64,000 nt of DNA from Kudoa neothunni (Eukaryota > Animalia > Cnidaria). The translations under genes were made by a program, and so were the position numbers. Below are positions 778 through 51,896 of this stretch, in pieces. Numbering within the stretch: position 1 is the first letter of the stretch; every line of letters starts with the position of its first letter. The DNA lies in NCBI GenBank assembly GCA_964304625.1, contig OZ199840.1:5135200-5199199 (forward strand). Direction: 5' to 3'. The notes beneath the pieces are model-generated. The model made no database searches. It was not told the origin of the DNA and was given only the letters and a program-made list of their open reading frames with translations.

Positions 778-1679
778 TCAGTTATTGTTGTATATTAATT
801 CTACTCCTTTGATTTTCAAATCAGGATATAATTGCAGCATATCGGTTATATCTTGTAAAGTATTAGAAATTTTATTTTCACCTATAATGTATATATTAGT
901 TTACTATAGTATATGTGTGTGTATATATTCAAAAATTACTATGTAATATATTTTGTGGACAAAAGGTATCTTTAATACATTTATGCTTGGCGATTTGATA
1001 GCATATTTTTTCCTCCTTTCGTAAAAAAATTAGAATCAATCATTGAACGATAAGTAATAACGGTATTTTTTAAATTGTCCTTCATTTGTGTGTTGCTAAT
1101 GAACTTTTCTTCTCTAGAATTTTTGTCTCGTGTTGGATCCATGCAAATTAAATGGTTCACTAACTATTAAATATAATAAAACAATTAAATTAAATATTAC
1201 CAAGCAAGGCATACACTCTACAGGTACTAAAACCTCTAAAACTAAAAAGAAAGGCATTAATAAACATATTAATGTATTTCATGCCTTGGTTTTGAGAACA
1301 TTTAAAATGATAAGCACATAGATCATTCGGTTCTGGAAATTTATTTACGAATCGATTTATACCTGTTCTGGCCTCCAACATTACGTGGTTCTTTGGTAAA
1401 TAAAAGTAAAAATTCAAATAAAATAAATTACGAGTTTCTCATCCTCATCGCCATATGAATTATGTATATAAATTAATGCTTGACTTATCTGCATTTGAGC
1501 TGGGATTCGAACCACAAACTGCACTAATTATTGTTAAATTTTTACAACAATTACTTGCTCATGTTTTATAGCAAAAATATTCCCCATCGTACCATAATCT
1601 AACGCAATCACAACTAAAAGTAATCTTATTATTTGTTGTCCGTAAAATAACTACAAAAAACAAAATATATTAAATTCAT
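778..1679 (-). CDS. Secreted Cys-rich saposin-like family, subfamily A, copy A1 (8 exons)
   Basis: Hand-spliced: MNLIYFVFFVIALDYGTMGNIFAIKHEQ|FVVRIPAQMQISQALIYIHNSYGDEDEKL|NHVMLEARTGINRFVNKFPEPNDLCAYHFKCSQNQ|VLEVLVPVECMPCL|LVNHLICMDPTRD...LKNT|EEKICYQIAKHKCIKDTFCPQNILH|SENKISNTLQDITDMLQLYPDLKIKGVELIYNNN*. Hydrophobic N-terminus; each exon has a counterpart in the paralogues; intron 4 is GC-AG. Saposin relationship is inferred via subfamily B. Confidence 0.8.
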
Positions 1680-2689
1680 TTTAAAATCAATTCTTATTCG
1701 TTTAGTATTTTTATCATCTCCAATTATAATCATTAAATATCTAATTCATTATCTTTTATTTATAATTTAATGCAATATAAATTTTATATCTCATATTTTA
1801 CGGATAAAATAGCTGCAATTTTACCTTATATACAATAAACAATAATGGAAATACATAAAATACAATAATACTACTTTTATAATTCAAATAACTCATTTTT
1901 AATTATTACATTTAAATATTGTTTCAATAGATATTAATTCATTTTAATATTAGATAGGGATATCAATAGCATTGAATTAATATTTATATTCTTGTATCAG
2001 GAAACAAATAAAATATCTAATGCTAGATTACAATTACATCAATTCAAATATCTAACCCTAGTTGTGACCGATTATGTAGTTATCTATTGGTTATTTTAAT
2101 ACATGCGATTGAGTTATATAACATTGAATAAATGTCATCAATTTATACAAAAGCATTAACGCTAATTCCTAGCTTTGTCTGGCATTATGTGATGGAAAAT
2201 TATAAAATTTATTTTTATTTTTGAATGGAGAAATTCTACGTAAAATTTAATCTAATTAGCACGTTAAACCCCGTAAATTTTATTTTTCTATTTTAATTTT
2301 TGCATTTTTAAGCTTTGGATTATTTTTGCAATGTGATGATTTTGGTACACCAAGTTATGTACTCACTTTCCATTCAAATATAAATGAAGGTATCGAGAGA
2401 AATTAATGAGTATTTTTAAGTTTATTTTACAAATAATTTACCCAAAATATAATTACCTTAATTTTACGAGCGATGTAATTTACGGCTTAAGTTTATATAT
2501 TTATTTATTAAATATCATCATTAAATAACTTATATAGGACTTTCAGTTCTTTTCAAAATAAGACGATAAATATTAATCCTTCATGTTATAAAAATTATTA
2601 TTAGTCTACAAACGACAAGAAAAATAAAATAATAAAATCTGAATAACATAAACAATCTTATTTTACTTTTTATGGGGAGGGGTAAAAAC

Positions 2690-3450
2690 AATCATTAAAT
2701 TTATCTGCCAGGCCAATAGACGCAACCACACGTATGTGCCAATTTGAAAAACATTAGATTTGTCGTGTTAACTCTGTTATACAATCCTTAATTTTCAATT
2801 ATTTTCTCTTTTTTTAAACATTTTCCTTACGAATTTTACGATATCAGAAATTGATATTCATACTTTCAAAGTTGAGTGAAATAACCGAAAATTCCACCAT
2901 TTTAAAACTACATTCTTGATTCTCTTTAATAATCATTGAAATTAAATTTTGGCAGGAGGAACTACTTCAATCCTACTATTGACAATCTTATAATAACGAA
3001 AAATACATCCAGAAATTAGATAAATTATTTATGGATCAATTGTCGATAATCCGAGGTGATGTTCTATAGTATGTTAAGTGTCATCCTTTATTGAATTGAA
3101 TGTTATATCCTAAATTTATAAATATACGTTTATAAGATAACAATATATTTACCCGTTATACACGTGTATCCCTTAAAAACAAAACATAGTTTTGTTTGTA
3201 GAGAAAAAAAATCATTAAATTTAGTCGATACTAATTATTTTAAATATATTTTCACGCCGTTTCAAGTGTTATAAAATTCTAGAGGATGTCCGAAATTTAC
3301 AGACGACATAGATTTGTTTATCCAACACTAGGGTCAAATTTGGCTACGAGCACGATCAAACGTGTAACCAACTCCGGACAGGGAGGATTAAAAGGGTATG
3401 ACTTGGTTTTTAAGTGCGAAAAGAAACTTCTTATTAACGATATTAAGATT
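2690..3450 (-). mobile_element. Probable highly decayed Ty3/gypsy LTR-retrotransposon pol fragment
   Basis: Minus-strand broken frames give RNase H-end-like 'HTIEHHLG' (~3050-3075) followed by integrase Zn-region-like 'VYWPG' (~2705-2725), in the expected order; many stops, no LTRs seen. Confidence 0.3.
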
Positions 3451-3576
3451 ATTAAAGGAAATAAACACACTTCAGTAATTTAATACATTTTATTTTATAA
3501 ACTTACATTAATTCATAAGGTAACGGAACATTAAATTCGCGTGATCAAAACATTAAGTTTTATACAGGTTTTTTAA

Positions 3577-5938: not shown

Positions 5939-6042
5939 TTAATGTGGGTATATAATTTTATAACATTCCCATAGAAATTTGAAATTTACTCTATTTATCT
6001 ATATTTGTTTAACGTACCATGTATCAAAAACTTGGCTAAAAT

Positions 6043-6120
6043 ATAGGTTTAGGTTATGCCCCAACAAATTCCATCCTCTAACCAGCTTAGGAGAAAATCA
6101 TCCCATGGGTTTTTATGCTT
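6043..6120 (-). repeat. Solo terminal fragment of the hAT family found at 19353-23353
   Basis: tataggtttaggttatgc...aattccatcctctaac... is close to the reverse complement of 23285-23355. Confidence 0.65.
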
Positions 6121-7008
6121 ATATTAAATTGAAAAATAATAAATAAATTATACATATGTCAAAAAATTAGCTAGAGTCGATAATGAAATTTTTATTCAAA
6201 ACTCAATAATTTCTTACGTGGTACAAATCCAAAAAAAACCTCTATTTATTAGTTGTGATTGAATTATATTAATAAAGGAATATTGTTTTTATATAGTTAA
6301 CTTTATCTATTTGAAAATTGAGCCTTGTTTGATATTTGCAATTTTTACTATATATTTGACGTAATTATTATATTTAGATAAGGTAAAATTTATTATTTGG
6401 ATTAAAACTTTAACCTAGTAATAAATTAACGCTTGAATATTTATGAAAATAAATATATTTATATCGTACTTATATTGATTTTCATAGAATAAATTTTTTA
6501 TTCAACCATTATCGCTATAAGATTAATTTTATTTATTACTTATTATTCGGCAAAAAATTATAGCATATTAAATTCGGAGGTCGGTTTTTAAATGATGAAA
6601 TATTATTTACTAATAAAAAGTAAATAGAATATTCATTATAAATTTTTCAATTACTCATATATATAAAATATTTACAATTACTTTGAATAAAGATATATAA
6701 TATATTCATTCATATCTAGGTCAAATAATTTAATTTCAATATTTTTTAAAGCTTACAAAACAGTGTTATATTTACTTATAATTGTTTAAAAAAAATATAA
6801 TAAATTATAATATAGTATAATCAACACCAATAAAATTTTAATTACGTAAATTTTTTACCAAGTGACAATAAATACACGGAAAAAAATATTGTTAAATTTG
6901 AACAATGCGTATATTTAAAATTGTAATATAAATTTTAAGATGATTTTCATTGAAATAAATAGATTGTGAAAAGAGATAATATTTTAGACGTAGTTCATAT
7001 CTATGTTG

Positions 7009-8498
7009 TTAGTTGGATTCGAATATTAGTTCCACCTCATTTATTTTCAAATTTGGAAATTTAATCAGTATTTCTTCTAAATTTTGCATAGTTCGAGAAG
7101 ATACATTTTTTTGGAATCCCCAGTTTTCACCTATAATCAAATTTACAAACATGATTTAGAATTATAAATCATTATTAATATGATATATAAATTTGAATTA
7201 TTTTTTTCAATTACTGTGTAATACATTTGGTGAGCAGTATTCTGCTCTAATACATCTATGTTTGGCAATTCTGAAATGTCTCTTATCATCCTTTTATACA
7301 ATTATAAAATTAATTATTCAGTAGTAATTATTATATAATATTTCAACATCAGTTTTCATGTGAGGTGTGCGCCAATATTATATCATAAATATACCAAAAA
7401 ATAGATATTTACTGTTAGATAAAACGCACAAAATCCGCGAATTTTATGTTTTAAGGATAATTTCAGTGATTTTGGCTCCATTTTAAGATTTATTAATACT
7501 AAATCTAATGATTAAACTATTTGTTTGATTTTGTCTATATATGGTCGTAAATTAAATAACGTATCAAAGGGATGATACAAATATTCGGTTTTGTTATCAA
7601 TGTTCTAGATGATAGTGTTTAACTAATTGTATTACATACACGGTTATGCGATCATATAATCTACCATGATAAAGTTATATAATGGATTATTTCGTATTTT
7701 TTAAATAAATATAAAATATTATTTGATAAATCATCATTAAAATAGTTAAAATTTTTAATCTCAATTAAGCAGGGTAATAGACATTCTATTCTACTGATTG
7801 TGTCGATTGCAATTTGGTCAGCTCAGTTTCAAAGTGATGTTGAAATAATGTAATATTTTAATTACGTCATTTTTTAGGTTATGATGAATCATTGGATTAT
7901 TGCCAAGGTTGAGGGAACCACTGCCATCATTTGGATTTGGTTCCTTGAGCATTAAATAATTAACTAGCTATATAAAAATATATCTAAAGTATCAATTATA
8001 ACTTTACCAAGCAAGGCATGCACTCTGTTGGTAGTAAAACTTCCAAAACTATAGTGATTATTAAAGAAAAAGATAATCTAAAGTTTTCATTGTTACCTTG
8101 ATTATCACTGCATTTGAAATAAAGTATACACAATTCATTTGGTTCAGGATATTTGTTTACAAACGCATTGAGACCTATCCTAGCGGTTCCAATTACCCTA
8201 TTCTAATAATTTAAAAAATATAGTCAATTATAAATGTATATTCTAACAATTTTTTCATTAACATTTCCATAACGTAGATGAATTATATTTAAAGCGTCAC
8301 TTATTTGTGTTTGAGCTCGAAAGTGAAGAATCAACTAAAAAAATGAGATTGATTATTAATACCAATTACCTACCTGTTCGTGTTTCAACTTTATATTCTT
8401 GCCTAATATTTGGTATATAATTGTAATTAAAGCTAAAAGTATTTATTGTATTAATTTATAGTAAAATATTCACCGAAAACAAAAGGAATAACGATCAT
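7009..8498 (-). CDS. Secreted Cys-rich saposin-like family, subfamily A, copy A2 (8 exons)
   Basis: MIVIPFVFALITIIYQILGKNIKLKHEQ|LILHFRAQTQISDALNIIHLRYGNVNEKI|NRVIGTARIGLNAFVNKYPEPNELCILYFKCSDNQ|VLEVLLPTECMPCL|LVNYLMLKEPNPND...LKND|DDKRHFRIAKHRCIRAEYCSPNVLH|SENWGFQKNVSSRTMQNLEEILIKFPNLKINEVELIFESN*. All GT-AG; intron 6 is long (7291-7865); closest paralogue of A1. Confidence 0.8.
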
Positions 8499-10277: not shown

Positions 10278-11226
10278 TCATTTTTTAGTATATACTAAAA
10301 ATATCGTTATTTTTGTCATCTTGAATCGTTTAATTTGACTTTGAATATAATGATGATATCTTTTGGTTTTGTTTAATTTATTCAACGATAATCTCATATT
10401 CACCCCTATTTAAGACGTTGAATAAAAATTAAATAACTAATAAATTAAAAAATTTAATTTTTTTTTAATTGAAATTATACTATTATCATTGGATATATTG
10501 CCAGATGAAACGGATCGTTGAGGGCAAAATTTGTCTTTTACACATTTTATTTTTGATGTCTGAACACAATATTGTTCACCCTGTAATTTATATAAGATTA
10601 TTATAACAATTAATTACATTCGAATTTATTCAAATTTACGGCATCAAAGGTCCATTCATCCATACACTTTAGGTAAAATGCATTCTAAAAGGTAATAATA
10701 TTAAATATTTTAGAATTAACATTACTATGCATGGCATACAGGTGTGTGGTTCATTAAATAATTTGACTATTCAGAAAAATTAATTACGTACAATATATGA
10801 TATTATACTTAAGTTTTTAACACATCTTGCATAGCGCGAACACAGTTGAGTCGGTTCAGGAAAATTGTTAATAAATCTAAACAAATCGCTACTAGCCTTT
10901 ATAGTGATTATGTCCTAAATTATAAATTAAATAGAATTATAAAATGAGAAAATATACAACGTTGTCAGGATTACTATTGTAAAAAACCATTATTATTTGT
11001 AAAGCGTCAATTAGTTGATTACGAGCTTCAATAGTATAAATATACTAAAACATTTTATGACAAAAATCATAACTACTAATGACTGTTTGAGTTAGATTGT
11101 TTTTATTGACGATTGATAATCCAAAACCGAATACTCTACCTTATTAATGAAAATAATAAAATAAGGTTAATTTAGTGTAACTCTGCTACTCCAATAAAAT
11201 AGAACCGAAAATACAAATTTATACAT
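10278..11226 (-). CDS. Secreted Cys-rich saposin-like family, subfamily A, copy A3
   Basis: MYKFVFSVLFYWSRVFGFGLSIVNKNNLTQT|YIYTIEARNQLIDALQIIMVFYNSNPDNV|DIITIKASSDLFRFINNFPEPTQLCSRYARCVKNL|IKLFNEPHTCMPCI|NAFYLKCMDEWTFDA|GEQYCVQTSKIKCVKDKFCPQRSVSS...|...QIKRFKMTKITIFLVYTKK*. Last-exon boundary is less certain. Confidence 0.75.
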
Positions 11227-12659: not shown

Positions 12660-14300
12660 GGTAGGGTTCAAACCGCCAGGCCTATGTTTATTGACAATGG
12701 CTATTCTTATGGAAACGAATTACTCCTCTGTTATGGAAGACATTACAAGTCTGGTTGCTTATATGAATTTATCTGTTTTTGATCTAATTTCTATATATAA
12801 ATTATTAGATAATTTAAAGAATAAAATTTCAGCATTTGTAAGCCCTACATATAGTGTTTTAGTGTTTAATAACTAAATTTACATATTCCGGGTGTAAACT
12901 TATGTAATATAAACAATTTAGTTGGAATAAAACGTAAGCATGTCTAATGGTGGTTAGAAATCATTATTTTAATACGTCTTAACGCACGCTGTTTAACTTA
13001 GAATGAGTCATCTCCAATAATTTACGAAACATGTACGTTTCTATGTAAACATTTTTCAGTATAAATTTAACAAAAATTTCGTTAACTAATTAACATTAAT
13101 TGGATTCGAAATATTTTACATTGATTTTAACCACTTTTCTCATGTATCTGTATCTATAAGATTGTAACATAGTTTCGTGGAATTTTCGTTGTTTTGCCCC
13201 AACAAATGTGTATACTTTCAACAGATGTATGAGAAAGGTTTACATGGTGCCTATTAGTGAATACAGAACCTATACTTGTTAATTTAAACACATTTATCAA
13301 TTTTTAACAAGAAGGGTGAATCTAAATTTTCTGCATTAAATCCTCAGGTAGTGGTAGCGTTGCAATAAGTAATTTTATAAAATGAAAATCTCTGAATAGT
13401 GATTTTGCTTCGACTATTGTAAAGCGAGCCAACGAAGAAATTTAGTATATAATTAACAATGTTGGAGATAAAATAACGGTTAATTCGTCCTTGAGAATTT
13501 TGAATCGTTCTGAAAAACTTCATTTTAAGATTGCAAACATTTGCTTCCTGATACAAATAAATGCGTAATTTTTATAGTTCAGATAAATCAATTTTTTACT
13601 CCATTGAAGAATTGATCAACTTATCCACTAGCCATGGTGTTTTAACTGTGTGCTAAAATTAAATTTCTGCGAAATAATCATATTCAAAAAATTTTAACAG
13701 TAAAATAGCATTTTTTAATTTAAGGAATAGGTCTGAACAAATCAATTTAATAGCGCTTCATATGAAGAAATAAGGACATCACCTTTCAGACTTATTCCAT
13801 GCAATTGGTATTTTATATCTTACAAACTAATAAATTTCTATTCTCCAACTAAATATAATATACACAATTGTTCTACAGATTTCGGTTATTTCATAGTTGG
13901 TTAAAACTTAGAAATAGTCTCATGAAATAGAACGCCTCATAATCAAATAGGATTTACGCACATATTCCGAAATTATGGGTGACCAAAGAATACTCCAACA
14001 AGACAGTTTCTACTTATTAGTAAATTTTTTAACTTGTGATTTCAATTAAAGTATTTATATTACACAATAATAGGTTCAGTAAATGTGAGTGTATTTAATG
14101 AACAGTTTAGTAAATAGGGCAGACAAAGTTTTAAAAATTGATTCTTTAAATTTGCAAAGAATTTTAAAAATATTAGATTATAAATTTATACATTCAAATA
14201 AGAAATTAAATTTGAAATTTCTTCTATAACGGAGGAGTTATTCAATTCCATGTGAGTAGTCACTCAAGGAGAGAGGATTATATGGATCCACAAAAATAGC
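12660..14300 (-). mobile_element. Decayed hAT transposase remnant
   Basis: Minus-strand fragments in hAT order: LAHS*N (~13645, cf. CxAHxLNL), FLRWLAL (~13425, cf. TRWxS), ALRRIK (~12975, cf. dimerisation domain ERxFSxLRRIK). Many stops; boundaries approximate. Confidence 0.4.
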
Positions 14301-14719: not shown

Positions 14720-15681
14720 CTAGGGTGTGTTTGACACAATAGTTATACGAGAGGGTTGGAAACCTTTAAGTAGTTCTTGCACATCTGACAATTTTTGAGT
14801 GTTCGGTACGCTTGTACATTTATCTTTATCTATAATAATAATAATGTTTTTGAATAATTGTTTTGAAGGATTATATTATATTTTATGTATAATTTTATTG
14901 TATTACCCTCATCTGATGATTTAACTACGCAAAAGTTATCTGAGGTACATTTGGCGTATGCATCATTATAGCATTTTTCCTTATTCTAAATTCGAGTAAA
15001 ATATTTCATATAAATATTCCTTAAAATACCGGATTAAAACCAAGGGATCCATGTCTTCTAGCATTGTTGAATGATAAATATCTATAATGTGGATTTTCAG
15101 TCTCTTCAACATATCTTTTGTAGAAGATATTCTAGCTAAGTTATAGAGAATATTTTGTATACTCGACAATACCACACATGGAACGCAGTTACTGGGGAAT
15201 TCAAAGTTTTCGACTGTCAAAAGTTATTAATTAGTTAAATAGTGTATTGATTTGTTAAAATTATCTACTTTCATTTCCATTCATCTTACAGAACTTGGTA
15301 AGTAATAGATCGGGTTTTGGAAACTGATTGATCCATTTTTTCAAATCTCCTAACGCATATGCAATATCCACAGCCTATTTAACAATTATTAGTATTACTT
15401 ATTTAAGAATATAGTTGCCTATTACCAATATGACATTTTTTTTTTCGTAATAATTCTTTATATCCGTAAGCGAATCAATGAGTTGACGTCGAGCACAAAG
15501 CTTCAGTGATAACTAATTAATTTTTTAGATGATCAAACTCTAAAATTCATTTATGTCTTACGTCTGTTCCATATACCCCAAAAGGAATAACATACGCATA
15601 GATACCTATCAATATTTATTAATTCATATTAATTAAATGATTACCGATTAAAACAATAAAATAATGACCTAAAATTCCCAT
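14720..15681 (-). CDS. Secreted Cys-rich saposin-like family, subfamily A, copy A4 (8 exons)
   Basis: MGILGHYFIVLIGIYAYVIPFGVYGTD|LSLKLCARRQLIDSLTDIKNYYEKKNVIL|AVDIAYALGDLKKWINQFPKPDLLLTKFCKMNGNE|IENFEFPSNCVPCV|NIFYKRYVEETENPH...GFNP|NKEKCYNDAYAKCTSDNFCVVKSSDE|DKDKCTSVPNTQKLSDVQELLKGFQPSRITIVSNTP*. Same phases and 41-nt micro-exon (15173-15213). Confidence 0.8.
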
Positions 15682-16733: not shown

Positions 16734-18822
16734 CCCCCCTATACGCATTAGGGATCAAAAATGGGCCCAGCCTCTTTTATCATTGACTTTCTTAAAATCT
16801 CTCTTACAGAACTTTAAGTAATTTTTCAAAATTTATGTTATTATTTTATTAATTAAAAATATTTACTTAAATAAAATAAATTTAAACATTATTAAATCAT
16901 CGAAACATTAAAATTTCCGCCCCCCCCCCAAATTTGGGGCATTTTTGACTCTCATCCTTTATTGGAAAATCGATGATAATTACTCTATTAATTCTATATA
17001 TAATACCAAATTCAACTATTTAATAATAATATAATTTTAAGAATAAGTAAAATAATTTTGATGAAGAGATAAATCTGAGTTTTTAATATGTCACGTGATC
17101 GCAGAGATTCAAAATCAACTGAACTTTGGACTGTTTTAGAGATTAACACGAAATTCTATTGGATGACACTGATTCGGAGTTTAGCAACTATTTAATTGAC
17201 AATCCTACATCCGATTATGATGATTCGGAAGAAGAAGAATTAACACTGGATTGATTGCCACGTTGACTTCAAAAGATGGATAAAGTGGTCTAAACAACCA
17301 ACAAGAAGCCAACGAAGAACTATAGCGCAAAATATTCTTAAATACCAACCAGGTTTCAAACCACATGTACTGAAACCATCGGTTACCCCGCTCATGGCAT
17401 TTTTAAACTTTTTTGACAACAAAATCCTTGATTTGATTGTTGAATGCACCAATCATTATTACATAAAAAACCATCGATAAAAATTAACTATGATTATCGA
17501 AGATGATCTAAAGGAACATATAGGTGATTGCATAATGATTGGTTTAATGAAGTGCAAAAATATGGATGTTCGTGAATTCTGGTCAACCTAAAATAAATTC
17601 ATCAATCTCTATTAATTTATTTGAAAAAATATCTTCCTGCATGCGGTTTGATAAAAGACAATCCAAAATACCAGATGATAAATTTACTCCTATAAGAGAA
17701 GTTTTTGAACACTTTATTGGAAATTATCGAACAAATTATACTCCAAATGAACAAATGACCGTTGATGAGCAACTAGTGACATTTAGAGGGAGATGTGGTT
17801 TCGAAATGTACTTTCCAAATAAACATGACCTAACCTAACCTGGACGGTATGGTATGGTATGGTGTTAAAATGTGGGCTTAGTGAGATTCAAAGAATGCTT
17901 ATCTATTCAATGCAAAAGTATATCTTGGAAAAGAAGATAGCAAATTACAGTTTAATCAAGGGAAAAATGTTGTTAAAACATTATGTGAACCGATTTTTAT
18001 ATCTGGTCGAAATATCACAACAGATAATTTTTTCACTACTGTTTCCCTCGTTAGGTTTCTACTTGGCCAAAAATTGACAATTGTAGGAACTGTTCGAAAA
18101 AATAAAAAATTGTTGATACTAGAGTATCAAATGTCAAAAGGAAATTAAGATAACAGTCAGTTCTTGTTCCAAGATATTACCACACTCGTCAAATACAACC
18201 CTAAGAAAAACAGATCGGTTGTCTTGTTGCCAACACTCCACAGAGATGCGAATATTGAAGAAGAAAGCCAAAAACCTGAAATTATATCTTACTATAATTC
18301 CACAAAAGGTGGAGATGATACTCTTGATCAATTAGTAAGATATCTGTCAGTAAAAAGAACAACACGAAGGTGGCCAATGGCTCTTTTCTATAGTTTCTTA
18401 AACATCGCTGCATATAATGCCTACTTGTTGAATTGCTAAAATCATCTCGCATTCTTTAATAAATATAGAAAGAGATCCAGAAGAGAATTTCTAAAATTAC
18501 TCTTTATCATTTAAAAGTCCCGAAACTGGCATTCCATCATTAAAAAGGGCCTGAAATCCTACAAAACAATGCTTCAAAATGACGCCAAATATGTATTCGT
18601 TCGAGGAGATTGAAAACGTTAGCACAGTGCAAATTATACAATAAAAAGGCGTGCAAACTTCATAATAAAGAAGAAATAATTTGCATTGAATGTTTAAACT
18701 CAAACAATATCGATTAGAATTTTTCGAATTTTAAAAGCGTTTTTATGTGTTTATTTTTTAGTAGTGGTCAAAAATGACCTCCATTGCGAGTTAAAGTAAT
18801 TTTTTGTGGGTTCGTGCGAGTG
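16734..18822 (+). mobile_element. piggyBac transposon, frameshifted/inactive transposase
   Basis: Fragments CMRFDK, TVDEQLVTFRGRC, ITTDNFF, YYNSTKGGDDTLDQ, RTTRRWPMALF are canonical piggyBac DDD motifs; TTAA at 16730-16733 and 18823-18826; palindromic GGxxCAAAAATGxCC subterminal motifs. A second, outer pair of end-like sequences (~16668, ~19012) suggests nesting. Confidence 0.9.
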
Positions 18823-23353: not shown

Positions 23354-23408
23354 TATATTAGCCAAGTATTTGATATATAGTACGATTAACAATTATAGGA
23401 GAATATCG

Positions 23409-25019: not shown

Positions 25020-26050
25020 TCATAATTCCACATGTAGTAAAACTCCTCTAACATTTAGTCCAAAATTTTCTCTCAAGAAATCTTTAATGGAGGATCCGTT
25101 TTGCCTACATTGATATCCATGGGGACATTCAGCTACAATGATTTACTCATTAACATATTATTCGCACTTTATGTAATATACAAGCATTTGTATCAGTTTG
25201 AGATCCTTCTTGACTTAATTCTGAATAACATTCAATTATGATCATATCATATGCATATATATATATATATATTAATAAGCATTATTACATTAGTTAAATA
25301 AATATTTTCTATAAGTGATAAAAATTAAAATATTACCGTAAATTTGATCACAAAGCCCAACGTCCATGCAATTAACTTGAGCATTTGCTTTGCAATCCGA
25401 AATAATCTATGAAAATTTCAAGCAATATTACATATAAAGTAACTTGTCTAAAAGCTGGTATATCTATCGATATTTGATTATTTATTAATCGATTTATTTT
25501 ACATTCTTTGTCAATAATTTCCTATTTGCTTCTTACTCAAAATCATATAAATTAAATTAGTTACAATACAAACAAAACATATAGGAGATATATTAAAAAA
25601 CTGAACTAAATTTATTATTATTTTTTTATTACTAACTGTTGATATTGATGGTACTTGTGTTTCCGTTTATTCTGGCAAATCTATTACCGTGCACTGTAAT
25701 TAATGTAGAATTATTCACAAATTCCACCATGTCAAATGTGGCTTTATTGAGTAACTCAACCTATAATTTATTTGAACAATTAATAACATATTAAATACTT
25801 TAGTTGGACTAGTAAATAATGGATTCGTTGTTAAGTTATACAATGAAAGCGAAAGTTGTCTCAATGCCGTAGGAGACAATTCATACTACAAAAAATTTTT
25901 ATTTCAACAAAAAATTTATTTATGAATCAATACATGGGATGCAGATATTTTTATTACCATATCTTAACTATAATCAAAACAGTCAAAACACACCAAAGTA
26001 CAGCATGCCAGCGGGAACATCATCATATTCATCATACTGATCTGAATTAA
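25020..26050 (-). CDS. Cys-rich saposin-like family, subfamily A, divergent copy A5 (5' end unresolved)
   Basis: ...QYDEYDDVPAG..DMVIKISASH|YELSPTALRQLSLSLYNLTTNPLFTSPTK|VELLNKATFDMVEFVNNST...NRFARING...|IQFFNISPICFVCI|EIIDKECKINR...PAFRQ|IISDCKANAQVNCMDVGLCDQIY|...SECPHGYQCRQNGSSIKDFLRENFGLNVRGVLLHVEL*. 41-nt CxxC micro-exon at 25565-25605. Start codon and penultimate exons are uncertain. Confidence 0.7.
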
Positions 26051-31321: not shown

Positions 31322-32326
31322 CTAGAACTCTACTTTTATTTTAATTATCAATTTTTCTTCATCTGATAAGGGTTTTTCGTCATATTTTATAGCTTTGGAA
31401 TTTTGATAGTTGTTAATTTTATTATACTCATCTAAATTAAAGTCATTATAATTTGAAAATTAAATTACATATATTTTTTAAAGAAGACATTTACGTTTGT
31501 CTTAATTTTTAATTTTAAAGAAATTATAAAAAAGGAAATATATTACGTGAAGGGCAAAAACTATCCTCAACACATCTGGATTTTGAATCGTTTAAACATT
31601 GTTGTTCTCTCTTAAATATTATATTATAATAATATTTTAGTAACGTATCACCTCATTTAATTTTATGCTTTGTTTATTATTTAATATTGAACTTTTCTTA
31701 GCAATGTTAATATTATTATATGATTCCGTTGTGCACTTTAAATAGAACAATTGCTAATGACAAGATTTCATTAGATTCAATATATATATATATATATATA
31801 TCCAGAAAATACCACACAAGGCATACAATAACCAGGTGAATATAGCTTTATGACTAAAAAATTTGTATAGTTCATATCATCAAATTAATAACTTAAATAA
31901 ATAAATAAATATACTTAAGTTTCCTTCACATTTAGAAAATCGTGAACATAAATCATTCGGTTCTGGAAAGTTATTTAAGAACTTTACTAGATCCAGTTTT
32001 GCTAATGCTATCTGTCTATCCTATAGAATGAGTTTCAATGAAAATTACACATTAATTATTATACCAGATTGTAGCTTGTTTTCATCGTAATATCTCTGTA
32101 AAAATCCTTATTATGTCCATCAGTTGCAGATGGCACTTAACTGTAGTTAAAAACTAAAACGTATTAATATCGAAACATATTTGAATTACTTGTTCATGTT
32201 TTAGTTGTGGGAGGGAAACTCAATGTTGCACTATCGAAGTAACTTAATACTAAATTATAGAAATAATTATAACCACCAATTAAAATCACCTAATATAACA
32301 TAATATTCGACCCACAATAAATACAT
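31322..32326 (-). pseudogene. Cys-rich saposin-like family, subfamily A, copy A6 (two frame disruptions: pseudogene or assembly error)
   Basis: MYLLWVEYYVIL..LKHEQ|FLTTVKCHLQLMDIIRI..|DRQIALAKLDLVKFLNNFPEPNDLCSRFSKCEGNL|IIKLYSPGYCMPCV|QLFYLKCTTESY...LNE|REQQCLNDSKSRCVEDSFCPS|...EEKLIIKIKVEF*. Frame breaks in exon 2 (~32220) and at an A/T run in exon 3 (~32100); downstream exons intact. Confidence 0.7.
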
Positions 32327-35851: not shown

Positions 35852-38800
35852 TCACAGTTTACATTTAGGACAAATTTGCTGGTGGTTTGAATAGCAGGAT
35901 CTAAGCCGAAAAATTAAAACAAATAACAATAAATCAATAACATTCTTACATGTGTGACACAGTGTTACACAGTGAACAAGTATGAATATTATTCTCAAAT
36001 CTAAAAATGGGTGCGGAACTCAGACACACTAGACATGTATGTCCTCTTCCTTGGCAAAGCTGATTTATAAGTTATTGGATTCAACAATTCACAACTAATA
36101 CAAATAAACATTACAATACAATCCACTTTAATATGTTTATAAAAAAGAGTGATAATGTGGGATAGTTTATCTTCAAGGCTATTGTTGAGTAAATCCACAA
36201 TATTCCTGAGGGTGAAATTGGGTGGTGATTTAATCAAGTGATGGTATTGTTTAAGCTGGATAACAACAACAATTATCAAAACTAAAAATTACACTCAACA
36301 ATAATCGAATGTACCTGATTATAAAGTCCACATCTGTTGGCATAACGACAAATGGTAATATATTCAACCATATGAGAAAGTGTGAGATGTTTATTCTATT
36401 TTTAATGGAAAAACTCTATTCCAACAAATTTAAAGTACCATAAATTTTGAATAGTCAGGCATTATATTTTTGATATCAGGGACAACAGCAGGGAGAGTGA
36501 ATGTGCAATTTATATTATTGGAAATGGCGCGTAATAACAAATATGCATCCCTGCAAATCTACAGATACAAAATTTATTTCATATAAAATATATTTAAAAA
36601 AATTTATCGAATTAAAAGAATCTTACAGGATAATATTCACAATCACCATAGTTGATGAGTTTTGAAGGGATGAAATAAGTGTCTTTAAAGTGGCAAAACT
36701 TGCAATAATAGAAACCAGTATAATGGCAGAAAAGGTAGTCGACTCCCTTGTTGCTACTTCCAAAATAGTCTTTTCTTCCTAATGGTACAAAATTAGAAAA
36801 TAACTTCCAATACACAATTTCTAATTTCTACCCTTAAGCAGACGATTGCAGGTGAAACATCTGAATTTCTGTGAATTAAGGTCGTTACTAGGTTTAAATT
36901 CGATAAGATTAGCCTGATAAGTTTTGTCTAGCTATTAAAAATTTAAGCCGTATCAACATATTAATATAAAATACATTATAAACTTTATGAACGCATTCCC
37001 TCGCGTAATAACTAAGGCAATTTTTATGCAGACTAATATGGCAGCGAGAGCACATAAGATAATTTTTAATATTCCAAATGATGCCATGGCAGGATTCGCA
37101 TCGTTGAATGTTATCCAATTGGAATTTAGGAAAGCCAATGGTGGTACTAAACAAATGTCCAGATTTTTCAACTGGCTCATTTTGATGGATTCCGTTCTTT
37201 GATTTGATTATTTTGTGACGGCTTCTAAATTATAAAAACATTATTAGTTGAAAAAAAAAGACTATAGAACTATATTAATTAACCTCTTATTTGAGATTTC
37301 GCCCGATTCGTTGTCCTTCATAGCTAAAAGATTAAACCTGTGTTTAACCAATCGTTCAATGAGTTGACATTTTTGATCTTCGGTAAATAATTCACTCTCT
37401 TTCTTTAATATATGTTCGTAGATCCTGATAGTGAGCAGACTCTCTTCATTTTGGGTAAAGCCCATAAAATTCTACTCGAAATTCCCGATAATAAATAACT
37501 CAAAGATTCTCTGATTCAAAATACTTCGTGGTTGGTTAATAGATTTTGATTCACGCTCGCTGTAAATAGATCTTCAACGATACCATATTTGGTGAAAATT
37601 TTTTCAACAATGTTCTCACTGAATTCGTTCGCAGAATTTTCTTCACTGTACGCAGACGATCCGTCGCTGTATTCGCTGTTATCTTTGGTGGTGTTACTGA
37701 AGCAGGAAGAATCGTGCACAGTTGAGTCTATACCTTTAAATTTCACATATATTATATCATAATTTAATTTAATTTAATTTAATTCAATTCAATTATATTA
37801 TATTATTTAATATGAGTATATTAAACAATTACCTCCAATACTCCCCCTCTGTATTAATACCATTTTCACAGTTCTCTATCTTTTCTGAAAATTCTTCTTC
37901 ATCTAAACTCTTCAAATAAATTAACAAATACATCGAATAAAATTGATAAAACCTTATTCGCTGAAGAAATTTGGGAGGTGTTTGCTAGAAAAAGCTCAGA
38001 TTTAATCACCACTTCATAAATTACGTTGTGAGTTGGATACATCACCAGTGTGAGATATCATATTGGAGCTGACGGAGTTAATTTGAATGTTATTAACGCC
38101 AAGTAGATCAGCCAACGAATTGCTCCACTGAGACCTTAATCCAAAATACAATAGAATAATATATTACTAATAAAAAAATACATACAATACAGAGGTACCG
38201 TACATATCCAACAAATCCAGTTTAAATTCTTGAATGTTTGTTTCAAATAAGGTCTTTAGGTGAACAATTAGTTCTACATTTCTTACATGAGATTGTGGAA
38301 AATAAAATTTCCTATTCAAAAATTAAAAATAAATAATAAATAATATTAAATGATTAACGAACTTGATTTTTTGTTGATAATTAATGAGATTGTTGAATAT
38401 GTTTCCCATTTCATCACTCATCAAATTATATGCAATCCATTTGGTAATATAACGATCGAGTAGTTGGCTATTGTCACTATTATACATATATATATACACA
38501 GGAATTTTATATAATTGGATTATTCAAAGCATTATCTACCTGTAACAACAGAATTCGTTTATTTTATTATCCGTAAGTACAGATATTAATTTACTGGCAC
38601 TATGGTGATTCGGATCTACTCTATTACTAAACAGCGAGTTTATTAGAGCTAAATTATTCTCATGGAGGAATATAAACTTGTTTTTAGTTTTGTGGTAGAA
38701 TAGCATTTTAATCTGGCTAATTAGAGAAACAAAGGAATCCATTCGACTTAATTCGATTATCAAATTGGGGTCATTTTTCAATTCATTAATATTTATATAG

Positions 38801-39020
38801 AACTATAAAAATATAATATAAACACAATTGGCTAATTAAATATTATCTGCTAAAATAAATTAACAAAAAACAACCTTTGAAATCAGCAGTTCGAAATCGT
38901 TTACCATTCGTTTGGAAATGGAATTAGTTTTTGAACCATGGATGATAATTGATGGAATGGTTCGACTGAATATTTGGTCTATAGTTAGTAAGTCTTCAAT
39001 GTGGTGATATAAATGCTTGT
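35852..39020 (-). CDS. DEF8: DEF8-like protein (coiled segment, C1 domain, Rubicon-homology Zn domain) with an N-terminal RUN-like domain; multi-exon, 5' end uncertain
   Basis: QKCQLIERLVKHRFNLLAMKD (cf. DEF8 [20 protein letters not shown]); C1 RCESCHGIIW..YLMCSRCHISLHKNCL...EC; SQKFRCFTC; RH domain CHYTGFYYCKFCHFKDTYFIPSKLI..YPV; terminal ICPKCKL*. Upstream in-phase exons contain RUN-like SQIKMLFYHKTK, ITKWIAYNL and KFYFPQSHV. Confidence 0.75.
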
Positions 39021-40076: not shown

Positions 40077-40784
40077 CTAATTTTGTGGATTGATAATCGG
40101 TGTAGTGGTGGCTTCCAGTGGGCGAGTTATCACGGGTAAAACTGCGAATTTTCGAAGTTTATTATTCTTCCAGTGTTCATATTTTTGATACTCCTCAAAG
40201 AGTAGGTTGAAAATTATTTTTTCAGTGTTGTCCAGCCGTTGACAAATCGAATTCATACTGTTTTCGTTGTTGTTTTGAGCTTGGGTGATTATTGTTTTAA
40301 TGCGTTGATTCCATGTCTAAAAAAATAATATTAAAAATACAACCAATTAACAACAAAAATTCTTCGTCTGATTGATATATACCACTTCAATACAATCAAG
40401 AATCTCAATCGCTTGATTATCATTCTTAATAATCATATAACAAAATTTTTGGGCCAACAAATAAAAGTAGGGTCCGTATTTCTGGAGATTCAACACTTGA
40501 GCACCAGCCATATAAGCTTTTCGATATTTATCCTTGAGATAACGAGGAATCTCCATTTTTATATACACTTTCCTTTTGAACAGATCCCTGGCCAACCATA
40601 ATGGTAATTCTAATTTGGTACCAGCGGGGATGTGTTCGTACTTGGGTTGTTTTGTTGATTTCTTGTTCAACAAATAACCCATATTCAAAACTGTCACATT
40701 AAAATGGGATGTTATTGTGGAACACTCGGCCATTAGGTCATCCAAATCAAAATAATCTCCGTAGTTAATGACAGAATCGTACAT
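40077..40784 (-). CDS. GINS3: DNA replication complex GINS subunit Psf3 (2 exons)
   Basis: YFDLDDLMAE, GTKLELPLWLA, LNLQKYGPYFY are Psf3 hallmarks; exon 2 (40317-40077) TWNQRIKTII...RLDNTEKIIF...YEHWK. Confidence 0.92.
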
Positions 40785-45600: not shown

Positions 45601-46356
45601 TAATGATCTAATTAACAAAATTAAATACAAAATGAATCTTGATAAAATTCGATTTACTCGTATGTTGTATTATTAAGAAAAATAAGAATGTAATAAAGTA
45701 ATTAAATTTTACGCCATTTTGTTTATCTATCAAATTATTGTTAACTAATACGAAAAGATGCCTAGTGTCGCACCAGTTCAACCAAATTCCTTGTAATATT
45801 AAAGAAGATACCACAGAGTAATCTATATTGAAAGAATCATCATTATCCAATATTTGTTAACTTGGGATCATTATTTTATTCAATTATGCCACAGACAACG
45901 AATACCAATAGATACATATTCATAATTCATCAAATATATTTTTGTGCAAAACAGAAATTAACCATAGATGAAATTTTTCACTTAAGTAACTTTTCTATAT
46001 ACTTTCACAATGTATATAATAACACGTTATCGCAAAATGTGTCAAGTACATCAAATATGTAAATATATAGTGGTATTTTTAAAAAACAAAAATCAACAAA
46101 TTTTCAATTTTAATTGGTGCATATAAAATTTGGGTAGGATTTTTTGTAATTTGTCAATTTAAAATATTATTTGAATGTATTTATTGTGGTAAAAGAGGTA
46201 ATTACAAGTTATTTGATAAATTTTATTGCATAATGAAGTGGTCGATTGAATGCAATTAATTTCTAAAAGATCAATTGATTGATACCTAATTTTTTTAATA
46301 TATTTGAAACCCCACTTCTAGGCATTATCCAAAATCTGGTGTAAGTGGCTTCGAAA

Positions 46357-47542
46357 ATGAAGGAAAAGATGTTTCAAATATTGGCTCTTCTGTTTTTGTC
46401 TCGTATTATTTTAAATAGTTTTTTTATTTTATATTTATAATAATCACTATAGTTTTCACCTACACAAACCAGGGGAAGGATAGCGATTTTATATTCCCTC
46501 TCAAAAGCGTAACATTTCTTCAGCTAGAAGCAAAAATTAGAAATATTTAGTTCGAGGGTGTAAGAACCATAAAAGAAGCTCTTAACCTCACCCTCTATTA
46601 CCTAGAGCAATCTCAAGAATTCATGTTCGGTGGGAATATTTGCATATACGCGATGCGCAAACGAAGAGTAATTTCATTACAGTTATTGTTTATAATTTTA
46701 TATTGAATATATTACTCATATATCACAGTGTCGTAGAATGGTATCCATCTTGAAGGAACGATACCAGGAAATGATTGCCAAATACATCAATCGTGAAATG
46801 ATGTGCAAGTACGTGTTCAAAAATTGCTATAATTTCAGAAGACGTAACTATTTTCTACAAAATATCAACTTATGCATTTTAAATAGTAAGACTCAAAAAA
46901 TCATACAAATGCTTGTCATGTCAAGTAGTCACAAATCTCATCATTAATTTTAACACATTTTAAGGCTACCGTGTTTTTGTCAAACAACAAAAAAGTTATC
47001 AGAGCAAACGACTATATTATTAAACTTTATTGCAGCAGGGAGAACTCATCTCTAAAAAGACAACAAGTTTAATAACTTTGTATATAATTTTCTAAATGCC
47101 TTTTTAGTGTATGGGCAAAATATACGAATACATGGGAATATTTAATCACGTCAGACACGGAACCAAACCATTGTGGTTCTGTATCAAACATGGCAAATGT
47201 AGAAATTCCGTACTGGAACATGATTTCTCTGATTTTAATGCAATGCTAAGCAACACAGCATTACCAGAAATAAGAGAAATCCTCTCAGGATCTTCAAACA
47301 GCACTGTTGTCAATGCGGAAAGTCATCGTTACCACGACTACAATGATTTGAATTTGGGTGGATCCAATCACAACGAAGAATCCACTCCTTTAAGGGGTCG
47401 CTATCGAAACAGATACCGACCAAACCGCCCTGACGACCACTTTTTCCGCTATCATGGTCATCATTATCACCTACAACCCCCTCCTCCGGATGGATGGAAC
47501 GTTCATTTTGGACTGCTCCCCTTTTTCAACATTCTTATCTAA
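46357..47542 (+). CDS. Secreted tandem saposin-like protein with His-rich tail, subfamily B copy B1 (7 exons)
   Basis: MKEKMFQILALLFLSLFTYTNQGKDSDFIFPLKS|FEGVRTIKEALNLTLYYLEQSQEFMFGGNICIYAMRKRR|CRRMVSILKERYQEMIAKYINREMMCKYVFKNCYNFRR|LRLKKSYKCLSCQ|ATVFLSNNKKVIRANDYIIKLYCSRENSSLKRQQ|CMGKIYEYMGIFNHVRHGTKPLWFCIKHGKC...HFFRYHGHHYHLQPPPPDGWNVHFGLLPFFNILI*. The second module has saposin-B-type C-x2-C-x23-C-x11-C-x23-C-x5-C spacing with Pro before C5. Confidence 0.85.
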
Positions 47543-47725
47543 TAAATAATAAAAATAGTGAATCCTATCCAGAATTCACTCATGTGGATTGGAAGGTTTA
47601 TACATCTAACTGATTCACAAAAAAAAATATTTTTTTCTCGAGTTCCTCTTTATTATGCTTATTTTTTCCGTGACTATTTTATGAAATTATTACATATTAT
47701 TCTGAATTTAATAAATATTTTTTAA

Positions 47726-49912
47726 CCTTTTCGTGCCCAAAGGCTATCCTAATGACCACATGTATATTCACTATATGGAAGCTTAGTTATGGGAAATAGG
47801 TGCACATAATTATTTGTTTCAATGCTATTTATAGGGCTTTTTAAGAGAATGTTGTAAAAAACTTCATAACAGTAAACTTTAAGTCATTTTGATTTCATAA
47901 AGTCATTATATTGTTTCGTTAATTAACGAATAGTTTTCCAATAAAAAATAACATTATAATTTTGAATTGTAGGTAACAAAATAAATAATATTTTTATTAA
48001 AGTAAAGCATTAGTTTATGTAACTTTTAAAAAATAATAATGAAAATAATACATGGTCACTAGGATAGTCTCTGGACCCATGCGGTAAATTTTTTTTAGCG
48101 CCAACTTTTAACCAGGATGGATCACGACGTTAATTATAATAAACTAAATAATGATTAATCAATATTAGAAGTAGTTATTCTTCCAGATGCCGTTCTGTTA
48201 GAACCTGTCAAAGTTTCTGATGATGAAATTTAAAAATTATGCCAATTAAAAATGATGATGTATAGTAAAAATGGATTAACAAAGGTCCTTGGCTTGATAT
48301 TTCGGATTATCTCATTTCTATTAATGATTTTGAAGAATTGATCGATCCTATTGATTACTTTTAGTAATTCATTGCTGAATCACTAATCCAGATGATAACA
48401 AATGGAACAAACATTTATGCAACTCAATGAGGAATAAATTCTATTACGAATATTGAAGAAATCCAAATGTATCTAGGGATCCTCATTTTGATGGGTTTCG
48501 TTAGAATGCCTCGTTATCGCTGCTATTGGAGCACATCATTCGATTTCCACACGTATCAAACGTTTTCTCTAGAAACTGATTTGGTAAAATTTCAAAATTT
48601 ATTAATTTCTCCAATAATTAAGATTCATTAAATATCAAAAATCAGAAAATTATGATCGTTTTTTTTAAATACGATATTTTTTAGAGCGCCTACGGTCCGT
48701 GTTTTTAAAGATAAAACCAGAAATCTGCAATTCAGTCGATGAGAAAATGATTCCATTCAGAGGAAGATGAAAAGCCAAAAGTATCTCCATTTTAAACCAA
48801 CCAAATAGGGGTTTAGAATGTTTTCTCGGTGTGGCTTAGTGTATGATTTTATCTTGTATGAGGGAAAACCACCAGCCGTTTCACCAATTTGTTGTAAAAT
48901 TGTACGAAACTTCAACAACCTTATTTTTGTATTTTGGTAATTATTTCACATCTATTCCAATGAAGCAATTGTTGATGAAGCGAAACATCTACTCTGTTGG
49001 AACCATAAGAAGGAACAGAATTAAAGATTGTCCATTAACCCCGGTAAAACATTTCAGCAAGAAAGATCGCGATTTTTACGAATTTTCCAGGATACCAAAA
49101 ATGGAATAGTGTTAACTCACTGGTGTGACGGTTCTGTTGTTACGCTTTGTTCTACTCATTCATCACCCCAATCCCTTTGTGTAGTTAAAAGAGTCGATAA
49201 AAGGGGCTAAAAAGACTAAAAATATTGACTATCCAATGTAGTTACAGAATATAATAAAAACAGTGGTGGAGTTGACTTGTCAGACATGTTGATGACACTG
49301 TACAAGTTAAACCACATATAACGAAATTTCAATGTGAGAATATAATTTTGGGGGCATAATTCCGCCATAAATAATGCTTGGTTATTATATAGAAAAAAAT
49401 ATAAAGGTCAATGGTGACAACAACAAAGTAATGTACCTTTTGTGATTTACTCAGTCTATAAATGAAAGTTTGATTCACTTCAAAAAACCCAGTATGGTAA
49501 AACAATGTATGCGTCCTTCGTTGGATGGTTCTAAAGTTGTTTCTGTTGATCATATTCATAAAAAAACCAATCGAAAACCCTGTCAGAGTCAATAAGATTT
49601 TATAATGTTGACCACTACCCTGAAATAGTTTATACAAAAGGAGGATGCATACTGTGTAAAAAAAGAAAACAATTCAGCTGCATTAAATGTGTAATACCGT
49701 GTTGTATTTTTAAAAATCGAACCAGATTAGACGGAAATTTTTTTTCGCGCAAATGCCCAATGGTTGGTTATTCTAGTAACCACGTAGTAAAATGTTAAAA
49801 AATATTATTTAAACATTTAATTAGAATTCAAAAAATTTTGAGATGAAATAAACAAGAAATATTTATTAAATATATTTTTATATTTCAACTAAAAAATTTG
49901 GACATGAAAGGG
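47726..49912 (+). mobile_element. Near full-length piggyBac transposon, inactive
   Basis: TTAA TSD at 47722-47725 and 49913-49916; TIR ccttttcgtgcccaaa / tttggacatgaaaggg (13/16 match); motifs SVDEKMIPFRGR, LYFGNYFTS, VGTIRRNR, YNKNSGGVDLSD. Confidence 0.92.
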
Positions 49913-50762
49913 TTAATAAAAATGATTTCGTTCACAATAAAATTGTTAGATAAATTAGATCATAAAACCTTTTATTATTCTAGAAACATTCAATCTCTTA
50001 AAGTAATGCTAATAAATAATATTTAGTAGGATATATTAGCTAATATATGTTGTTTTTAACACAAAATTTATAAAGGGTTTAAATATTATTGTTTTCCTTA
50101 ATAAATATATATTTATTCCTAATGTATATCATAATACAAAATTAAACTAATGAATGAGTTAAAAATTTTATTGTAATAACTGAAATGGCTATCAGCAACT
50201 ATTATCTATAGAAATCAGCCCATAACAACACTTAGGTAACTTCAATTTATTTACAACGAAATCGTAGAAAATAGTTTATATGGAAAATTAAGTAATTTTA
50301 CTCCTTTGGAAACCTAATAAATTCTAATGGTGACGAATATAAATCTATAAGGATGAAATCTATTCACTTTCTGTGTTCGAATAAGTTTATTGAGTTCAAT
50401 TTTATATGAAATAAATTGAATTAAACCCTGGTAATTTATTGGTTGAATAGTATTTTAGTAACTTGATTCTTATTATATTCATAATTATTTAGCTCTGTTA
50501 AAATTTGAGCTCTATATAGAGTTATAACTAAATATATCCAATTATGTAGTTACAAAATTCAACACTACCTAACTGTAATGAAAGGTATGAATCTCAATAT
50601 TAGTCTTAGCGTAAAAGAAAAATAAATAGTGTCAGTGAAAATAAATAGATAATTTATGAATAACTTGAAAATGAGAGAAAGGATTAAATAGGATTATTTT
50701 GAAGCCATATCCACAAATTTTCAAGTGATTCTAAAATTATTACTCACAGTAGTTGGTTAGCA

Positions 50763-51896
50763 ATGTTCCTAAGATTTCTATTATTTTTATTCTGTAAAAA
50801 TTCCATCGTTTTATTTCAATGCTTCCATTAATTTTTCAACTTTATAGTTGCATTCTCGATGCGCCTGGAGGACGAAGGCCAAGACTTTATTTTTCCTATA
50901 AAAATGGTAAGAAATATTTAGAGTAATGTGAGTTAATTAGAGAGTCTTTTTTTTAGCTAACAAATGTGAGAAGCGTTAACGAAGCTTTGGATATCACAAA
51001 CAGATTCCTTCGAGAATCCCAGGAACTAATGTTTGGAGGAAATTTGTGCAAACACGCAAAAAAGATGCAAAAAGTATATTTAAATAGTTTATTTAAAACT
51101 ATATTAAAACGATTTAGTGCGAAAAAATGGTAGGCATCCTTAAAAATCGATATGACGAAATGATTATGAAATACATCACAAAGGAACACTTTTGCAAGTA
51201 CCTGTATGACAATTGTTACAGCGACAAACTGCGTAAAATAAATTAATTTTTTAATATAATAAAATTAATATGTTGACAGTTAAGTTGAAAGAAAATTATA
51301 AATGTTTATCATGCCAGGTAACATTTATGGCCATATCCCTAATAATATTACAAATAGACCATGGTGTTCTTATCAAATGAAAAAATGGTGATTAAAGCTA
51401 TTCATTACATTATCAATCTATACTGCGCCAGAGCAACCACTGAGGAGGCAATTAAAGAGGTAAATATTAAACAAATTGGTGCAATACTCCACAACAAATA
51501 TTTCTTGTATAGTGTAAAAGTGATATCTACGAGTACTTTGGAATATTCAACTACGTAACACATCGAACCGGCCCTATGCTTTTCTGCATCAAATACAGAA
51601 AATGTGGAAATTATAACCGAGTGTATCTAAAATCAATGTGTGAAAATGTCGATGAAGGATTGAGTATCAGCAGTTTAGTTGGACTCTCGCCAAACCATAC
51701 ATACCCTTATCCCCCTTATCACCGTCACCATCCTTACAATGGTACAATGCACCATAGTATATGGAATCATCCTTATCATCATTTCTACAACTATCACGGT
51801 CATCACCATCACTACCACCCCAATCCAGGAATTGGCTGGAATGTGTATTTCGGACTCCTACCTTTTTTCAACTTGGCTATGGAGAAGTGGGATTGA
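50763..51896 (+). CDS. Secreted tandem saposin-like protein with His-rich tail, subfamily B copy B2 (7 exons)
   Basis: MFLRFLLFLFFAFSMRLEDEGQDFIFPIKM|LTNVRSVNEALDITNRFLRESQELMFGGNLCKHAKKMQK|CEKMVGILKNRYDEMIMKYITKEHFCKYLYDNCYSDKL|LKLKENYKCLSCQ|TMVFLSNEKMVIKAIHYIINLYCARATTEEAIKE|CKSDIYEYFGIFNYVTHRTGPMLFCIKYRKC...HHFYNYHGHHHHYHPNPGIGWNVYFGLLPFFNLAMEKWD*. Exon-for-exon paralogue of B1. Confidence 0.85.

Follow-up and report, generated by a model that had tools for sequence, protein, structure and literature searches.

What does a 64-kb stretch of the Kudoa neothunni genome encode when almost no long open reading frame (ORF) can be seen in it? The stretch, hereafter the window (C3:5135200-5199199, 64,000 nucleotides, G+C content 26.6%), comes from a 40.3-Mb assembly of four contigs (17.2, 12.0 and 11.0 Mb, and one of 18 kb), and it holds just six ORFs of at least 110 amino acids, so that its genes are invisible to an ORF view. 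A preliminary description had proposed that it conceals eight secreted, saposin-like genes in two subfamilies, six on the minus strand (A1-A6) and two on the plus strand (B1 and B2). Here, we demonstrate these eight genes, the conserved architecture common to them and their membership of a family with at least 53 A-type genes, and we weigh whether the encoded proteins are saposin-like. The window is best explained as the right-hand end of a big lineage-specific tandem array of A-type genes, together with a two-gene sister family of type B.

Reconstruction of the hidden genes

All eight closing C-x5-C motifs lie at the places and on the strands given in the preliminary description, namely at positions 959, 7234, 10524, 14929, 25350 and 31554 on the minus strand (A1-A6) and at 47180 and 51585 on the plus strand (B1, B2). 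Comparison of the window with itself at the DNA level revealed almost no similarity among the loci, whereas stop-to-stop peptide pieces near the motifs match across loci in a fixed order by blastp (best E values of 5e-32 for the last exon of B1 and B2, 5e-15 for exon c of A1 and A2, and 1e-13 for A3 and A6), a combination that points to diverged coding exons with unconstrained introns between them. For the splice models, every in-frame GT/GC-AG intron joining successive paralogue-conserved blocks was enumerated, which left a single consistent solution for each gene, and conservation among paralogues is restricted to the exons. As had been claimed, these are mostly tiny and hidden from the ORF track (19-128 nucleotides (nt), save for the exceptional last B exon); introns span 36-115 nt, the sole exception being a 575-nt intron that separates exons e and f of A2. 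Full ORFs of 198-205 amino acids (aa) were obtained for A1-A4, of 302 aa for B1 and of 281 aa for B2; those of A2, A3, A4, B1 and B2 are clean, and that of A1 is full-length with one GC donor. TGA, TAA and TAG are all used as stops, and the standard genetic code therefore applies. An intron-less copy was sought across ~330 kb of the genome, and none was found.

The A-type genes consist of eight exons with intron phases 1-0-0-1-0-0-1; the series 1-0-0-1-0-0 noted previously is present in both types, but it leaves the seventh (phase-1) A intron uncounted. In A1 (778..1679, minus strand, 200 aa), the exons measure 28, 59, 87, 106, 41, 102, 76 and 104 nt and lie at 1679-1652, 1613-1555, 1518-1432 (b), 1390-1285 (c), 1241-1201 (d, bearing CxxC), 1163-1062 (e), 1015-940 (f, CIKDTFC) and 881-778 (tail, TGA stop). 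A GC donor (AAG followed by GCATGA) begins the intron 3′ of exon c in this gene, whose remaining donors are GT and whose hydrophobic N-terminus reads MNLIYFVFCIVIAL. A2 (7009..8498, minus, 205 aa) has exons 8498-8474, 8432-8374, 8334-8248, 8202-8097, 8048-8008 (CxxC), 7967-7866, 7290-7215 (CIRAEYC) and 7130-7009, and represents the six-cysteine form, without the middle cysteine pair. A3 (10278..11226, minus, 198 aa) comprises 11226-11190, 11139-11084, 11044-10961, 10914-10809, 10766-10726 (CxxC), 10684-10640, 10580-10481 (CVKDKFC) and 10405-10278. In A4 (14720..15681, minus, 201 aa), built of exons 15681-15645, 15605-15562, 15512-15426, 15374-15269, 15213-15173 (CxxC), 15131-15030, 14985-14907 (CTSDNFC) and 14829-14720, the exon-c cysteines are shifted and exon b carries one additional cysteine; a model with exons d and e fused was rejected, as the 41 + 102 nt version agrees with the paralogues.

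The two remaining A genes depart further from the pattern. A5 (25020..26020, minus) is a divergent member with exons b 25885-25799, c 25760-25655, d 25605-25565 (CFVC), e 25521-25444 and f 25406-25337 (CMDVGLC), and with tentative 5′ exons (26020-26002 and 25962-25934) and tail (25132-25020). Its model is in frame, and exon c lacks both cysteines while the CxxC exon is retained. A6 (31322..32326, minus) has exons 32326-32290, 32218-32190, 32020-31915, 31853-31813 (CxxC), 31753-31652, 31610-31547 (CVEDSFC) and 31431-31322; its exon b (32153-32063) is 91 nt long, out of frame and interrupted by an in-frame TGA. Because A6 is in frame solely when exon b is skipped, it is probably either a pseudogene or a form without this exon.

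The B-type genes have seven exons with intron phases 1-0-0-1-0-0, measuring 46/31, 56/59, 117, 115, 38, 102 and 435/384 nt in B1/B2. B1 (46357..47542, plus, 302 aa, 10 cysteines) comprises exons 46357-46402, 46453-46508, 46551-46667, 46729-46843, 46887-46924 (CLSC, 38 nt), 46965-47066 and 47108-47542 (CIKHGKC and tail), and B2 (50763..51896, plus, 281 aa) comprises 50763-50793, 50848-50906, 50957-51073, 51118-51232, 51280-51317 (CLSC), 51358-51459 and 51513-51896 (CIKYRKC and tail). The N-terminus of B2, MFLRFLLFLFFAF, is hydrophobic. Hydrophobic N-termini, previously attributed to every gene with a resolved start, are indeed found in A1-A4, B1 and B2; that of A6 is weaker, and that of A5, whose start is tentative, is only weakly so.

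Family size and selection

Eight is the number of genes in the window but not in the family, which extends well beyond it. A genome-wide search with an exon-c profile gave 53 matches (E down to 6e-16) on three chromosomes, mostly in two arrays on C3, with smaller groups on C1, C2 and C3. The first array (C3:5.049-5.167 Mb, minus strand) has the six A genes of the window as its right end and continues on the same strand for ~86 kb upstream of the window; the second lies at C3:5.316-5.469 Mb on the plus strand. The two arrays thus occupy opposite strands and point apart, with ~150 kb between them, and B1 and B2 sit just to the right of the minus-strand array. Only two copies of the B type exist in the genome.

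From the fetched loci, we modelled 37 A-type copies, each recognized by a 106-nt exon lying upstream of a CxxC exon. Exon c measures exactly 106 nt in all 37, which rules out chance, and the CxxC exon is 38 or 41 nt throughout. Amino-acid identity among paralogues is 32-49%, and the proportion of differing synonymous sites (pS, 0.68-0.80) indicates saturation while exceeding that of non-synonymous sites (pN, 0.33-0.49), as expected under purifying selection on average over a great divergence. These values bear out the earlier view of a strongly diverged tandem expansion, and the proteins are of secretory type, as had also been proposed.

The family could not be linked to any described one. Pfam, PDB and homology searches were run exon by exon, the spliced models being used only for counting and internal alignment. 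A profile of B exon 7 found 0 matches among 1.84 billion protein representatives, and neither this profile nor one of A exon c found relatives in the JGI metagenomes. The family is therefore undescribed in every database reached, in keeping with the preliminary description, which had not recognized it.

Kinship of the two gene types

The division into two related subfamilies is supported primarily by gene architecture. The first six intron phases of A and B are identical, and the sizes of corresponding exons agree closely (56/59 nt in B versus 59 nt in A, 38 versus 41 nt, and 102 versus 102 nt). Both types share the CxxC micro-exon (41 nt in A, or 38 nt with an alternative GT, and 38 nt in B), in both a phase-0 intron falls exactly one codon past CxxC, and in both a phase-1 intron follows a few codons past the preceding closing pair. 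At the level of sequence, hhalign placed the spliced A alignment on B in the expected register, exon c on B exon 4 and CxxC on CxxC, and an exon-level comparison returned the same register, but both matches are weak (P=0.019 and P=0.05, respectively), so it is the architecture that carries the case for kinship.

The C-termini offer a further likeness. In all six A genes of the window, a phase-1 GTAAT donor stands right behind the closing pair and is followed by a tail exon, and A tail exons end in an alternating hydrophobic stretch (LKIKGVELIY, KINEVELIF, KLIIKIKVEF); many A paralogues genome-wide end alike (ITNVTLQFE, IRNLTLEF), ~10 residues from the C-terminus. In the B tails (47400-47542 and 51800-51896), the sequence GWNV(H/Y)FGLLPFFN lies downstream of a His/Tyr/Pro-rich stretch, with GWNVHFGLLPFFN as the final motif of B1, and the tails of both types carry a similar alternating N-V-x-(L/F) motif.

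Intron phases repeat as (1-0-0)(1-0-0), and the B cysteines occupy equivalent places in exons 3 and 6 and in exons 4 and 7, which suggests that each protein contains two copies of one three-exon module. In both types, the protein plan would accordingly consist of a signal peptide, two such modules, each with a phase-1 intron at its entry and two phase-0 introns inside, and a variable linker ending in the short conserved alternating hydrophobic stretch.

Cysteine spacing and the saposin question

The six cysteines of saposin C, NK-lysin and amoebapore A are spaced at approximately 2/26-27/9-10/24/5 residues. Module 2 of both B1 and B2 reads C-x2-C-x23-C-x11-C-x23-C-x5-C, with all five spacings within 1-4 residues of this frame, and B module 1 reads C-x8-C-x24-C-x6-C, which corresponds to the last four saposin positions. 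The closing C-x5-C previously noted is present in all eight genes, although B module 1 closes with C-x6-C. In B exon 7 as well as A exon c, a proline stands shortly before the closing pair, and the hydrophobicity of the latter exon has an alpha-helical period, peaking at 105 degrees. The saposin-like proteins (SAPLIPs) consist of four to five packed helices with three disulfides formed by six conserved cysteines (PMC5890168).

Variation among the A copies offers hints at how their cysteines may pair. The two middle cysteines of module 2 are both present in 13 of the 37 modelled copies and both absent in 22, with a mixed state in two; their co-occurrence in 35 of 37 fits a C3-C4 bond. CxxC is always accompanied by the closing C-x5-C. 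The state of A5, in which the exon-c pair is lost and CxxC kept, fits a self-contained first C-x5-C combined with a staple from CxxC to the closing pair. The mid-protein order of closing C-x5-C, linker and CxxC recalls the permuted or tandem saposins of plant swaposins and prosaposin precursors, but the same state of A5 argues against the first C-x5-C pairing with CxxC as in a swaposin.

From these features, each module would most likely be a SAPLIP-type bundle in which disulfides staple amphipathic helices together. B module 2 would retain the complete six-cysteine frame and B module 1 its last four positions; A module 1 would retain just the closing C-x5-C, and A module 2 would be an abbreviated form, with an invariant CxxC and closing C-x5-C and an optional middle pair. 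The proteins may be secreted, adopt a helical saposin-like fold and bind lipids or membranes extracellularly, possibly as effectors; the membrane activity and the place at a parasite-host interface put forward in the preliminary description are conjectural.

A number of results weigh against this interpretation. The saposin-B pattern claimed in the preliminary description fits B module 2, but the A spacing (C-x2-C-x7-C-x31-C-x7-C-x5-C in A1) is non-canonical and far from saposin. With the middle pair missing in 22 of 37 A copies, ~33 residues part CxxC from the closing pair, so that the commonest A form appears long enough for a helical hairpin but not for a four-helix saposin. The co-occurrence of the middle cysteines may reflect shared descent instead of pairing. 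Between B modules 1 and 2, hhalign detected no similarity, so that an internal duplication is argued from the phases and the cysteine placement. No exon matched SapB_1 (PF05184) or SapB_2 (PF03489) in a Pfam hmmscan at E <= 10, and six-frame scans of the genome with both profiles returned nothing in the window and nothing convincing elsewhere; the few weak genomic matches were discarded as chance ORFs without a saposin look. Profile searches of the PDB, for which exon c and the SapB_2-like halves served as queries, gave no saposin chain at E <= 10, and an ESM Atlas look-alike search with B exon 4 was uninformative (scores of 0.80-0.83).

The saposin-like reading thus draws on cysteine geometry and gene architecture, and on no profile or structural test. 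A precedent shows how such a fold can go unnoticed: the aphid bicycle proteins, a micro-exon family lacking sequence similarity, proved in crystal structures to contain tandem or swapped saposin-like units, and AlphaFold succeeded on them only with custom alignments (PMC13041983). In the light of this precedent, the lack of sequence matches is compatible with a saposin-like fold. Taken together, we modestly favour this reading as the best available for B and, by descent, for A.

Alternative explanations

The strongest competitor is that the genes encode helical, cysteine-stapled proteins that form a new family without relation to saposins, in which the B spacing is convergent and the A core is a two-helix hairpin with local or hairpin disulfides and a function unrelated to lipids. 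The silence of SapB in exon, genome and PDB searches speaks for it, as do the short, non-canonical A spacing and the want of relatives among the 1.84 billion representatives and the JGI metagenomes; moreover, as the exon-c C-x5-C was lost as a pair in A5, the closing C-x5-C could be local too. However, convergence would have to account for both B copies holding five spacings close to the saposin frame, for the recurrence of the last three spacings in B module 1 and for a gene architecture common to A and B, and structurally confirmed saposin-like families may have no sequence similarity (PMC13041983). We therefore regard an unrelated family as doubtful, if still a credible possibility.

Decay is a further alternative, under which the genes would be degenerating relics whose expression has ceased, with conserved pieces left over from a recent duplication burst. 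The frameshift in A6, the cysteine loss in A5, the GC donor in A1 and the transposable element remnants between genes could be read in this way, as could the zero RNA reads over 46200-52100 in four RNA data sets (three raw runs and one set of contigs), which, however, constitute no test because the presence of the organism in those runs was not shown. Full-length ORFs have nevertheless persisted in six of the eight genes despite saturated synonymous divergence, pN remains below pS, and exon sizes and phases are maintained in at least 37 copies on three chromosomes; wholesale decay thus seems improbable. Least credible of all is that the proteins are secreted thiol-disulfide exchangers with a thioredoxin-like active site, since, although the A CxxC is nearly always C-[MVLS]-P-C, with a strand-like hydrophobic stretch before it and a hydrophobic helix start after it, no exon of the window has a thioredoxin-family Pfam match, too few residues follow CxxC for that fold, the B motif is C-L-S-C, without proline, and the constant pairing of CxxC with the closing C-x5-C resembles a structural staple.

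Comparison with known families

Returning to the saposin-like reading, the present proteins resemble the SAPLIPs (saposins, NK-lysin/granulysin, amoebapores, caenopores, Dictyostelium Apl and helminth saposin-like proteins) in being small and apparently secreted, in the near-canonical six-cysteine frame of B module 2 with a proline before its closing C-x5-C, in amphipathic helical periodicity and in a multi-domain, prosaposin-like layout, and tandem lineage-specific expansions of SAPLIPs are known in amoebae and worms. They differ in showing no detectable sequence or profile similarity, in a module 1 without CxxC, in the A spacing of 2/7/31/7/5, or just four cysteines within ~45 residues, and in an extra conserved C-terminal motif, to which B adds its His/Tyr/Pro-rich tail.

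With the aphid bicycle proteins (PMC13041983), the likeness is one of organization: both are big, fast-evolving families of secreted type, whose genes are split into many very short exons and are recognized through gene structure and not sequence; some members lose cysteines in either case, and two tandem or swapped saposin-like units are proposed here as well. In contrast, the bicycle proteins carry a paired C-Y-C motif, whereas our models have CxxC and C-x5-C and no C-Y-C; aphid genomes are about ten times larger, with long introns, and there is no sequence relation. No arthropod cuticle-protein domain was found in the present genome, a weak difference given that the control was silent. The micro-exon genes (MEGs) of Schistosoma, in which very short exons (3-81 bp) are interspersed with long introns (PMC10526429), are likewise secreted, lineage-specific and hidden from an ORF view by their tiny exons. 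Unlike them, the genes described here have exons of 19-128 nt, some of which (41, 59 and 106 nt) are not divisible by three, intron phases 1 and 0 and introns of ~36-115 nt, and MEGs are not cysteine-framed.

It is possible, if somewhat short of probable, that these genes constitute a novel micro-exon superfamily, comprising at least 53 A genes and the B pair, whose secreted products are saposin-like in tandem and end in a conserved C-terminal strand; it would have arisen independently of, but in parallel to, the bicycle effectors and would account for a considerable part of the secretome of a poorly sampled eukaryote with a very small genome (40 Mb). Were the fold confirmed, the family would join the bicycle genes as a second, independent example of a huge and fast-evolving set of secreted tandem saposin-like proteins, masked by micro-exons and detectable by gene structure alone. 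A family of at least 53 genes in such a genome is likely to form a major part of the organism's dealings with its surroundings or host, and should the fold not be saposin-like, it would still be a large orphan family worth a structure. For annotation, a simple rule follows from the models: a 106-nt exon, a phase-1 intron, and then a 38-41-nt exon ending one codon past CxxC.

Genomic surroundings

The 18,219-bp contig C4 stands out from the window by its G+C content (43% versus ~27%). Its first 10 kb gave no Rfam match and contain only two ORFs of at least 120 aa, and the contig is not obviously a mitochondrial genome or a ribosomal DNA unit.

A single-exon gene for the GINS subunit PSF3 lies at 40347-40784 on the minus strand (Pfam PSF3_N, E 5e-13). 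Among 5.8 billion proteins, it has one close relative, at 69% identity, encoded by a 2-kb contig from Logan run SRR31175926; the lineage is very poorly sampled. Beside the array, a weak Rubicon-homology-domain fragment (36001-36279, minus, E 2e-4) and, at 58404-59393 (minus), an ORF of 329 aa with weak tetratricopeptide repeat signals probably represent unremarkable housekeeping genes. The window yielded no tRNA. Searches of the genome for the canonical nematode spliced leader SL1 and for the N domain of nematode cuticle collagens found neither, the collagen result being weak because its control was silent too.

The earlier characterization of the region as rich in transposable elements receives partial support. 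Fragments of a piggyBac-type transposase (DDE_Tnp_1_7; E values of 3e-15, 7e-10 and 3e-6) lie on the plus strand at 17566-18439 and 48843-49109; they are degenerate remnants, the latter situated between B1 and B2. A dispersed repeat of ~208 bp (5939-6146, plus; 23247-23458, minus) recurs at least 34 times in the genome, with copies of 71-85% identity on each of the three large contigs, and is similar in kind to short interspersed nuclear elements or miniature inverted-repeat transposable elements. Finally, an inverted pair of ~230 bp (12698-12928 and 14039-14262), 68.5% identical, lies between A3 and A4.

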